Assembly: GCF_001194135.2 (NCBI RefSeq)
Contig: NC_068986.1
Coordinates: 20,551,307 to 20,615,306, forward strand
DNA length: 64,000 bases
Reading direction: 5' to 3'
From: Octopus bimaculoides
Lineage: Eukaryota
This document shows, in pieces, positions 30,301-33,300 of the stretch. The position numbers and the translations under genes were made by a program. Under the pieces are notes generated by a model. It saw only the letters and a program-made list of their open reading frames with translations, ran no database searches and was not told the DNA's origin. How positions within the stretch are numbered: position 1 is the stretch's first letter; every line of letters begins with the position of its first letter.

Positions 30301-33300
30301 AAAAACTTGACTGCTGATTATTCACTGTTGTCAACATTCTGTACCACTGAACACTAATGATCGTCTTTTTTGATTTCTACACAAGCAATGCAGGTGTGCT
30401 CACTGCTATCAAATAGTGTGCCCGCCTGGTCAGTCAGTCACTCGTGTCTCCTGGGTCAGTCACTAGCTGTGGGTCGGTCAGCGGTTGGTCATCTTCTACC
30501 TACTCCCGGCCCAGCCTGGCCAGGGCAGGCTGCTGCAGCAGCACCAGGACCAAAGGACAGACTCCTCCTAGTTGACTACTACTACAGAGCTATGAATGAA
30601 TACATTGGTATTAGTAGACATCTCTGAGGTGTGAGCTGAAGGTATTGTATACTTAAATGTGAGTCAATTTCAGTTGTAGTCCCTGGCTATTTGTCTCCTA
30701 TTTCTGCAGTGTAATGACATCTCTTTTACTGATTCATGATGGTCAAGTGTGATTTGGGGCAGTTTGGATTGCAAATTTCACCACCTAATGACATATATAT
30801 ATTTTCCTTTGGTTATAGTTTTTGCTGCTGGCTTTGAAACTGTTTTCCTCTTCATTGTTATAAAGGACACAGCTTAATTTGACTCCACCTTCAAAATTGT
30901 TGATGGAAGTAATATTTGTTTTAATTTCAGTTATCTTAGATGATGAGAAAGCATTTAGTTCATATAACAGTTGAAATTTCTCTTGACTAATAATAGAATA
31001 TTCTTATCACTGAATTAAAAAGAAATACTAATTTAAGAACCGACAGGATTAACTAATTTTAGTTTACCCTCTCCTTTAAGTTTTACAAAATGCTGGTCTA
31101 TAAAAATACACCCTTTAGATGTTGTAGTGTAATAAAAAAAAATGTCTATATAATTTAGTAGATATATCTTTTTTATTGCATCTTAAAGTGTCTTTAGTCA
31201 AAACCATTCACTTGATTTAATTATGTGCAGTTCTCTTCTTGGAATTGATTTTGAATGCTGAAGGCGCACCCTTGGTATAAGAACTTCATTGGCAAAACAT
31301 GCTGCAAGGGCAACAACCTGTTCACACCATGGTTGTTAAGTTTTTTTTTTTTTTCATTCACTGTTTTCTTTGGCACACTGCAGTTTATTTGTTGACTCTT
31401 AGTTCTCTTGTATTTAGCCCCTTTCTAGTAATAAATAGTCTTTTGTTGCTGTCATAAATGTTTTCCAAATTTTTTTTTTTTAAATAGATATTTTGTATTT
31501 GATTTTGATTTGTTTAAATTGTATAACTTATATGGAATTTGAAATTCTAATTGATATAGTTGTGAACTATTTGATTAAACATAGCTTTTTTGGTAAGTAC
31601 AGCTAACTGAGAATATTCATTGAATCTAGTTAATTTAGCATTTTTTTGTTTTGTTTCGAAATCATTTTTGATTTCGCATCTGTTTTTGAAAGGAGACGAC
31701 AAAAAACGTAATTCTGTGTTTTAACCTTTTAACACCTCAAGTGGTGTTAGTAGAATATATTGAAGTGTTTTTTGTTTTAATTTTTTTTTCTTGAAAGAAT
31801 TATTACAATTTACAAATTTGCCCTGGTAAGAACCATTATGGCAAGACTTCATTTTTCAAAATCAGCTTAGTTAAGTGGATATTTTATTTTTGTTTCAACT
31901 TACTGTATGTTTAGTATACTTTTTCTTTATACAGTGTAATAGTTCTAGTTCTTCACGCAATCAATTTTCTGAATAATATGCTATATATATATGCTTTTCT
32001 AGTTTCTGAGGTAGGTGTAAGAAGTAACTATTGAAGGAGATGACTGAAGAAAATCATTGTTCAAGAATACACGGTGTAGGATTAGGACTGAATCTTGCTC
32101 AGAAAATCTGCATCTTAAATGCCATCGGCACTCCTTTAGTTATGGTAATCTTAGTAACAGCATATATTTGAAGTATTTGTATTTTATATCTACTTAATAT
32201 GTATGCAAGAGAATGTAGGATGCTGCATGGTGAAATGGTTTTGGAGAAGTTACACATCGTCACACGACTCATCGAGTAACATTGAATGTTTTACACTTGG
32301 TCTTTCAATGAAGATTCCCTGCTGTTGTTTCCTATTGGATTCCTAGAAGCCTACAATTGCACAATGTTCTGCTTTCTCAGTGTGCAGTAAACCATGAAGA
32401 GTTACAGATCTTTACCAGTGACAGGATGTCAAACCAGATACATTGAAATCAAAATGGAACAGTATAATTTATTTTACTCAATATAACTTTCCATGGAAGT
32501 TTAAAAAAAAAGCAAAATGCAGTTTCATATAAGATATATTTGGAATGCTGCTTAGTTTCAAATTATTTTAAATTACCTGAAATATAATTTTGATACAGTG
32601 TTTAATTGATGATGATGATGATGATGATGATCACTCATATAGTATGAAGATGCTTTCCCATTCTTTGCTTGATCTATTATTTGCTTGAGCTGTATTTTGC
32701 TCAAAAGTTATGGCAAGGAAATTAGTTAAAAGCTACTGCATGTATGAACCAGTATTTTTGCATTTTATGAAATGGAATTTCTTCAAAATGTAGTCAGTGT
32801 GTCACATAATTAAAATTTTCCATCAGAAATTGGTTGATAAGGGCTGACAGAAATAGCATATTTTCTTTTATGCATTATTTACAGTAGAGGATTCCTGTTT
32901 CATGTTTTTTTTTCATTATTATTGTATGAGGAATTTGTCCCAGAATATATATTAAAGTGTTGTTTTTTTTTCTATTTAAGTAAAAGGGTGAGAATTTATG
33001 TCCTTGCTTTCTGCTGAGATTATTAGTGATAGAATATTTCTTGTTTGGTTTCTTTGAATGGTGATTTTGTTTTCTTTTCCTCTCTCTCTTTCTTTCTATC
33101 CTACTGTCCCATGTAACAGCTTTACCTCTTTATGCCATTATACTGCAGTTGAAAGGATATTGATATGCCCTAAAATACAAGAAAAATAGAAAACAAAAAC
33201 ACCAGCATCAAATAACTTAATTTGTATTATTAAAAGTGACTACTATAATACTGATTTTTTAAGGTTCTTTTCATATTTTTTCATACAAGCTTTTTTTTAT

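Follow-up and report, generated by a model that had tools for sequence, protein, structure and literature searches.

The stretch of DNA analysed here (the window) comprises 64,000 nucleotides (nt) of Octopus bimaculoides contig NC_068986.1. It carries the gene of OGT, the only enzyme adding O-GlcNAc and one whose dosage is tightly buffered, and within one intron of this gene lies the element under study, in which a branch-point-like motif and an acceptor precede a dense run of motifs resembling 5' splice sites (donors). The OGT model, on the plus strand, consisted of 21 coding exons between positions 18188 and 58260 with AG/GT at every boundary; with the addition of the exon-1 peptide, exon 1 being outside the window, it was identical to O. 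bimaculoides XP_014779432.1. The intron that harbors the element was the longest coding intron of octopus OGT, and it was delimited as follows:

23338 to 23406, plus strand: OGT exon equivalent to vertebrate exon 4 (69 nt, phase 0, 23 residues ending in ...GRLDEAK; donor AAG/GTAAAA at 23407)
23407 to 34599, plus strand: intron equivalent to vertebrate OGT intron 4 (11,193 nt)
34600 to 34716, plus strand: OGT exon equivalent to vertebrate exon 5 (117 nt, phase 0, peptide ending in ...HHFDK)

In vertebrates, OGT is buffered to a large extent through intron 4, which holds a decoy exon and is itself detained (Park et al. 2017, PMC5588854; Parra et al. 2018, PMC6097662, and 2020, PMC7373989; Govindan and Conrad 2025, PMC12017769). 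The same phase-0 pair of exons, of 69 nt (...GRL(D/E)EAK) and 117 nt (ACYLKAIE...), flanked the intron in three vertebrate loci, in the hemichordate Ptychodera, in the brachiopod Lingula and in a chiton, with an intron length of 2.2-2.9 kb in these loci. An antisense morpholino directed against the human OGT decoy's 5' splice sites (PMC7373989) matched at 25 of 25 positions within the vertebrate exon-4/5 intron. The shared exon pair and this match directly established that the octopus intron is the positional orthologue of the vertebrate detained intron 4, so that the initial annotation of this DNA was right as regards both the gene and the intron. In chiton, Lingula and Ptychodera the exon-4/5 intron far exceeded both neighbouring introns in length, and it ranked first or second among the coding introns of vertebrate, hemichordate and chiton OGT, as judged from approximate exon blocks.

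The features located at the element, several of them transferred from the cuttlefish Acanthosepion pharaonis by alignment, were:

30226 to 30771, plus strand: conserved block around the cassette exon (546 nt; 85.8% identity to cuttlefish over 556 columns, 99.8% to O. sinensis)
30349 to 30362, plus strand: branch-point-like motif GAACACTAATGATC (ACUAAY), 22-36 nt 5' of the acceptor AG, with CTAAT at 30354-30358
30363 to 30385, plus strand: pyrimidine-rich tract and acceptor AG (30384-30385), identical in cuttlefish, where transcripts use that acceptor
30386 to 30658, plus strand: cassette exon, long form (273 nt, donor AAT/GTGAGT at 30659; coordinates transferred from cuttlefish contig L011)
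30386 to 30641, plus strand: cassette exon, short form (256 nt, donor AAG/GTATTG at 30642; coordinates transferred from cuttlefish contig L012)
30394 to 30489, plus strand: cluster of donor-like motifs (CAG/GTGTGC, three GTCAGT, GTGGGT, GTCGGT, GTCAGC and GTTGGT, all except the last two conserved in cuttlefish)
30464 to 30466, plus strand: in-frame TAG, a premature stop 175 or 192 nt 5' of the 3' junction of the cassette, at which cuttlefish protein P0008 ends
30629 to 30664, plus strand: donor zone, 100% conserved, with GAG/GTGTGA at 30629 (use not seen), AAG/GTATTG at 30642 (L012) and AAT/GTGAGT at 30659 (L011)

Transcripts of the cuttlefish contained this element as an exon. Protein P0008 reads ...GRLDEAK, then the same 26 residues that octopus DNA yields in phase 0 from 30386, and stops at the TAG. 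It was encoded by two full-length spliced mRNA contigs (L011 and L012) from independent public runs, both 100% identical to the cuttlefish genome, which carried a cassette between exons 4 and 5 with GT-AG junctions, starting at the equivalent of octopus position 30386 and ending at CTGAAG/GTATTG (245 nt, L012) or at TTAAAT/GTGAGT (262 nt, L011). Cuttlefish thus splice the cassette, using a single acceptor and either of two donors, and it was present in around three of the 36 assembled cuttlefish OGT mRNA contigs. All its splice signals were identical in octopus, where its use would be predicted from the alignment. The motifs listed in the initial annotation were all found in place, and its phase-0 translation with the stop at 30464-30466 was correct; the acceptor that it had proposed at 30385/30386 is real, being the exact splice point of the cuttlefish mRNAs, with no sequence difference in octopus. 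The TAG lay more than 50 nt (175 or 192 nt) before the downstream exon junction, as in poison exons, and stop codons occurred in all three frames of the cassette, which lacks the open reading frame of a protein-coding exon. A search with the cassette peptide and a long open reading frame in another frame returned P0008 and no further species, the exact look-up of the predicted cuttlefish retention product in the protein collection was negative, and exact look-ups of P0121, P0123 and P0225 gave no gene on record.

The donor-like cluster comprised a GT at 30394 (CAG/GTGTGC, 8 nt past the acceptor), GTCAGT at 30429, 30433 and 30455, GTCGGT at 30473, GTCAGC at 30477 and GTTGGT at 30484. The frequency of GTCAGT on the plus strand was about one per 2 kb, and three copies within 32 nt occurred in the 64-kb window only at the element. 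When donor-like GT sites were scored with an approximate 5' splice-site matrix, their density at the element was the highest in the window (7 per 100 nt vs. 0.6 on average; 11 per 300 nt vs. 1.8 on average); since the next-best intervals reached 6 per 100 nt (and 9 per 300 nt), the cluster is real and only modestly exceptional. Part of it was a GGTCAGTCAC-like unit forming a short internal repeat, and two of the six donor-like hexamers (GTCAGC and GTTGGT) fell in or overlapped an 11-nt segment, GGTCAGCGGTT (30476-30486), that was present in both octopus species and missing from cuttlefish. AAG/GTCAGT made up 2 of the 20 real OGT donors (49723 and 55942), as had been claimed, and the frame arithmetic offered for the cluster was sound (frameshifts for 43 and 47 nt, none for 69 nt). 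The proposal that the GTCAGT motifs act as donors of a 43-69-nt exon was not borne out: the donors of the transcripts corresponded to 30642 and 30659 (256 and 273 nt), so that the cluster is internal and does not mark the 3' end of the exon, and the first GTCAGT appeared as a donor only in an annotated cuttlefish protein model. The internal run of pseudo-5' splice sites may be a platform for U1 binding; nothing distinguished it from the remainder of the perfectly conserved core.

Conservation of the cassette block was extreme. When compared with the corresponding cuttlefish intron, block 30226-30771 gave an E value of ~1e-177 and was the top-scoring block of the whole gene, above every coding exon. 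A perfect run of 104 nt was obtained at 30372-30475 in the alignment of three species (two octopuses and cuttlefish), and the cassette exon was 95.8% identical between octopus and cuttlefish vs. 75-94% for the coding exons. Between O. bimaculoides and O. sinensis, the identity was 91-93% in the intron background and 99.8% in the block. Conservation was uniform across the stop codon and continued into the flanks, with no codon-like pattern; conservation that equals or exceeds that of coding exons and reaches the flanking intron is a mark of poison exons. The GC content was 0.56 at 30386-30600 and 0.32 for the whole intron, in agreement with the earlier description of a GC-rich element in an AT-rich intron. 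The block occurred once in the window and once in each orthologous locus (69 kb and 51 kb), unlike an interspersed repeat, and none of the repeat families of the window covered the element. Thus, conservation was far above intronic background, both between octopus and cuttlefish and between octopus species, and the block was single-copy in the window and orthologous loci, so that neither of the two checkable outcomes named beforehand as speaking against the element was observed. An Rfam scan of the intron gave no match in the block; sub-threshold miRNA-like matches in TA/TG simple repeats at 34083-34145 and 23506-23591 (e.g. mir-297, 46 bits vs. a gathering score of 90) were taken as low-complexity artefacts.

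The block was not isolated in its intron. All nine conserved non-coding blocks detected between octopus and cuttlefish were located in intron 23407-34599, and none in other OGT introns; four of the conserved blocks make two conserved complementary pairs. Their positions were:

23663 to 23700, plus strand: box 1, 256 nt 3' of the exon-4 donor and complementary to box 1' (Smith-Waterman score 39 in octopus, 29 in cuttlefish)
27042 to 27079, plus strand: box 1', reverse-complement partner of box 1
27099 to 27166, plus strand: box 2, 19 nt 3' of box 1' and complementary to box 2'
30229 to 30291, plus strand: box 2', partner of box 2, its end 94 nt 5' of the first base of the cassette
12482-12498 with 15473-15489 (pair 1) and 15550-15622 with 16790-16859 (pair 2): boxes in the cuttlefish locus (L009)
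23681-23770, 25726-25796, 26101-26346, 27003-27167, 33116-33593, 33903-34027 and 34164-34224: further non-coding blocks of the intron conserved between octopus and cuttlefish

The complementarity of each pair was reached by none of 500 shuffles in either species. For pair 2, the predicted duplex was of -48.8 kcal/mol in octopus (-28.9 ± 4.6 for shuffles) and -63.0 kcal/mol in cuttlefish (-29.1 ± 4.0 for shuffles), and all 29 consensus pairs were kept in both, the five one-sided substitutions being wobble-compatible in every case. The two duplexes could loop out around 3.3 and 3.0 kb of intron and place the exon-4 donor at ~400 nt from the cassette acceptor, vs. ~7 kb in the unfolded intron. 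The docking and selector sites of Dscam and the RNA bridges of RBFOX are, as generally known, likewise conserved complementary boxes kilobases apart in one intron, beside regulated splice sites; the predicted cephalopod pairs differ from them in being only two, from two lineages and without covariation, and they gave no sign of excluding each other.

The element described in vertebrate OGT is a decoy exon of 143-153 nt that carries a premature stop, two 3' splice sites and two 5' ones; it overlaps an intronic splicing silencer (ISS) of 526 nt in human, is conserved to jawless fish and reported absent in Drosophila, and is required for O-GlcNAc-responsive intron detention (PMC5588854, PMC6097662, PMC7373989, PMC12017769). 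The earlier description of such decoys as having one acceptor and multiple weak donors has to be corrected in view of the two sites of each kind in the human decoy (PMC12017769). The vertebrate decoy was located in the vertebrate loci and then compared with the cephalopod block. Both are found in the same gene and in the same intron between the 69-nt and the 117-nt exons, at 52-62% of the intron length in cephalopods and ~53% in vertebrates; both are unannotated cassettes that contain a premature stop and offer alternative 5' splice sites, show a GC content of ~0.55, and sit in a conserved block of ~0.5 kb (546 nt in octopus, the 526-nt ISS in human) that stands far above the rest of the intron. 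In contrast, the exon is longer in cephalopods (245-273 vs. 143-153 nt), one acceptor was seen vs. two in the vertebrate decoy, the alternative donors are 17 nt apart vs. 7 nt, the intron is of 9-11 kb vs. ~3 kb, and pseudo-5' splice sites densely packed in the interior are a feature of the cephalopod exon and not of the vertebrate one. The candidate long-range RNA pairs are on the cephalopod side, and inclusion of the cassette in cuttlefish was frequent enough for the form to be assembled.

The only sequence shared with the vertebrate decoy was the 10-mer ACTAATGATC and a CAGGTG motif. ACTAATGATC lies 5' of the acceptor in cephalopods and vertebrates, the vertebrate copy being 63 nt upstream of the decoy acceptor (L015 8569-8578). 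A strong donor-like CAG/GTGKG occurred 8-11 nt past the acceptor in both elements (octopus 30391-30399; vertebrate L015 8639-8647), in both too near the acceptor to define an exon. These likenesses hint at deep descent or at convergence on like signals, and are proof of neither. The motif GAACACTAATGAT(C) of octopus 30349-30362 recurred as an exact 13-mer in the middle of the Ptychodera intron (L020 ~4125-4138, intron 1360-1373), with a Markov expectation of 1e-4 copies in that intron, and was absent from the chiton and Lingula introns; by its sequence the motif fits a branch-point or a site for STAR proteins (ACUAAY). Whether nhmmer, blastn or Smith-Waterman with shuffles was used, the cephalopod block showed no significant similarity to the introns of chiton, Lingula and Ptychodera, the element being found in coleoid cephalopods only and the chiton, the one other mollusc tested, being negative. 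Resemblances to vertebrate and outgroup introns picked out by eye (CAGAC...CTCCTCCT and others) failed the significance test and were dropped. A weak blastn match of 40 nt (77.5%, E 0.008) between octopus 33649-33688 and vertebrate L015 8901-8940 is probably due to chance, given the number of comparisons.

Ultraconserved poison exons of SR and hnRNP genes are generally known to be almost perfectly conserved over hundreds of millions of years, to carry a premature stop, to extend their conservation into the flanking intron and to be included in a minority of mRNAs, and in all this the cephalopod cassette is similar; the host gene differs, OGT being a metabolic sensor enzyme and not a splicing factor, and the likeness of the cephalopod exon is drawn from sequence and transcripts. 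Decoy exons of ARGLU1, SF3B1, DDX39B and SNRNP70 (PMC6097662) are also conserved cryptic exons of long introns with multiple competing splice sites, in different genes; in comparison with them, any effect of the cephalopod exon on intron retention is putative.

Truncated OGT reading frames of other animals clustered at the same junction. A first protein search, for which OGT exons 2-5 served as query, returned 120 short OGT reading frames (P0007-P0120 among them, including the cuttlefish protein P0008), and the point of divergence was exactly after exon 4 in ~100 of them, after exon 3 in 8, after exon 5 in 1 and after exon 6 in 5; this ranking of junctions is biased by the design of the query, the contrast with the neighbouring junctions being large. 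V was the next residue in most tails after exon 4, which is what read-through into GT should give, and products of the retention type were common for this intron in other animals. Around one quarter of the informative tails were unrelated peptides, a sign of further cassette exons at the exon-4 junction; examples came from mosquitoes, land snails and an isoform of Drosophila. An oyster form (P0287, 38 assembled contigs) had exons 1-4 spliced and read into the exon-4/5 intron, and a lophotrochozoan form (L013/L014) carried at the exon-4/5 junction a frameshifting exon of 67 nt that bore no resemblance to the cephalopod one. Mapping the alternative tails of other animals onto the outgroup introns gave nothing.

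Taken as a whole, we consider the element likely to form the 5' part of a stop-carrying OGT cassette exon that is conserved in coleoids and whose recognition makes the transcript unproductive and lowers OGT output; in cephalopods, much like in vertebrates, unproductive splicing would probably restrict the amount of OGT. Inclusion of the cassette would give a truncated reading frame of 189 residues with a premature stop and should trigger nonsense-mediated decay (NMD). Alternatively, as in the model of the vertebrate decoy, the sites of the cassette could engage the exon-4 donor and the exon-5 acceptor so that splicing is not completed and the intron is detained; either route would leave less OGT protein. 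The cassette, flanked by conserved intron, would open with a strong branch-point-like site, offer conserved internal pseudo-5' splice sites that could bind U1 snRNP, and close in two or three alternative donors, while the upstream half of the intron, through its two long-range pairs, could bring the exon-4 donor to within a few hundred nt of the cassette acceptor. We infer NMD of the inclusion isoform or intron detention, as well as U1 binding and the RNA bridge, as steps of this scheme. A coupling of the cassette to O-GlcNAc levels, suggested by analogy with vertebrates, is quite possible and is proposed tentatively.

Several results weigh against the proposal of a stop-carrying cassette that restrains OGT. 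Neither an octopus transcript with the cassette nor one with the retained intron was found, the exact look-ups of both predicted products being negative, and to our knowledge the rules of NMD dependent on the exon junction complex have yet to be established in molluscs. Folding of the exon region (30340-30700) as RNA gave a stability no greater than that of shuffles, and the long-range pairs come from two lineages only with no real covariation. No significant similarity was obtained between the cephalopod block and the vertebrate ISS or decoy with nhmmer, sensitive blastn or Smith-Waterman with shuffles. Because the likeness is positional and anatomical and the homology test failed, the cephalopod element is kept apart from the vertebrate decoy family and is best regarded, by analogy, as its functional analogue. 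Of the earlier idea of a mollusc version of the vertebrate switch, a coleoid-conserved cassette with a stop in the same intron therefore stands, whereas the chiton was negative and homology to the vertebrate element was not found. Finally, the cuttlefish annotation makes part of the element an in-frame coding insert of 20 residues. Two annotated cuttlefish OGT proteins (P0123 and P0257; models CAE1308337.1 and CAE1308339.1) hold exactly this insert at the exon-4/5 junction, its first 15 residues agreeing with the octopus phase-0 translation, and it was reproduced as a composite of 43 + 17 nt from which an internal 'intron' of 202 nt (GTCAGT...CTGAAG), beginning at the first GTCAGT, is removed; the same construction in octopus (30386-30428 joined to 30642-30658) would yield an identical peptide. 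A genuine alternative exon that adds these 20 residues to the TPR domain is nevertheless quite improbable, considering that assembled transcripts hold an uninterrupted exon of 245 or 262 nt with the stop, that no RefSeq octopus isoform contains the insert, and that none of the ~135 other full-length OGTs inspected has any insert at the junction. Moreover, conservation was equally high in the removed 'intron', past the stop and in the flanks, a Cys-rich 20-mer within a TPR repeat would be structurally implausible, and a gene predictor can invent such an intron merely to dodge a stop.

The remaining explanations take splicing as incidental or as a by-product. An intronic enhancer or other conserved non-coding element acting at the DNA level would account for a conserved non-coding block of 546 nt that is one of several in the intron, and many such elements have been reported in cephalopod genomes (PMC9023564); we give it a comparably low probability, as conservation peaks right at strand-specific splicing signals (branch-point motif, acceptor and donor zone), splicing is precise (GT-AG, with two alternative donors, in independent runs), vertebrates use the same OGT intron for splicing control, and the complementary boxes, conserved in orientation, point to a role at the RNA level. 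Another function of the RNA, such as an ADAR editing substrate formed by the complementary boxes or a non-coding RNA hosted by the intron, with the exon as by-product, is if anything less probable still. The conserved inverted complementarity does adjoin the element, and coleoids are generally known to edit RNA extensively and to conserve editing structures; on the other hand, the block had no Rfam match, its local fold was no better than shuffles, and the most perfectly conserved stretch (30372-30475) is the start of the exon, away from the arms of the duplex. As for GT motifs clustered by chance within a GC-rich patch, or a functionless cryptic exon derived from a repeat, the values of up to 6 donor-like sites per 100 nt elsewhere (vs. 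7 at the element) and the short internal repeat within the cluster speak in its favour, yet a block that is single-copy in the window and the orthologous loci, syntenic and nearly identical between octopus and cuttlefish, and spliced, effectively refutes it.

The stop-carrying cassette is comparable in conservation to the vertebrate decoy and lies in the same OGT intron at more than 500 million years from vertebrates, with no recognisable sequence similarity, so that the mechanism either is much older than thought or evolved twice at one place; each answer would be informative on how nutrient-sensing enzymes are restrained. The former possibility, in which bilaterians ancestrally had unproductive splicing of OGT intron 4 as a homeostat, and one ancient regulated pseudo-exon gave rise to the cassette of cephalopods, the decoy of vertebrates and a hemichordate element, appears rather unlikely to us. 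Under such descent, the retained (GAAC)ACTAATGAT motif, a branch-point or protein-binding site, would mark the common origin, the body of the exon would have diverged beyond recognition, and cephalopods would have added the long-range RNA bridges for a 10-kb intron. A like element outside vertebrates is apparently undescribed in the literature consulted. It offers a second, independent natural design to set beside the human one, in which a long exon with pseudo-5' splice sites lined up inside it is accompanied by candidate RNA bridges, and the comparison of both designs could help to explain the way in which the spliceosome is stalled by decoy exons. With truncated OGT transcripts piling up at the end of exon 4 across phyla, the question can be tested directly in many species.

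Other observations concerned the remainder of the window. N runs (assembly gaps) were present near 6750, 14310-14430, 41190, 54410, 59270 and 60580-61560, and multi-copy interspersed repeat families (SINE-like, e.g. TTCCATGCTGGCATGGGTTGGA...) were located at ~3160-22290, upstream of and within early OGT. Among the annotated octopus isoforms, an alternative donor after exon 8 adds RKV (42089-42097), an alternative acceptor before exon 19 adds MNELLFQ (55633-55653), and an isoform of 972 residues skips the 177-nt exon 18 (54516-54692). An O. vulgaris isoform of 811 residues (P0244) begins with MFVFR in the intron just 5' of exon 7 (~40713-40727), suggestive of an internal start or of a short form of OGT.

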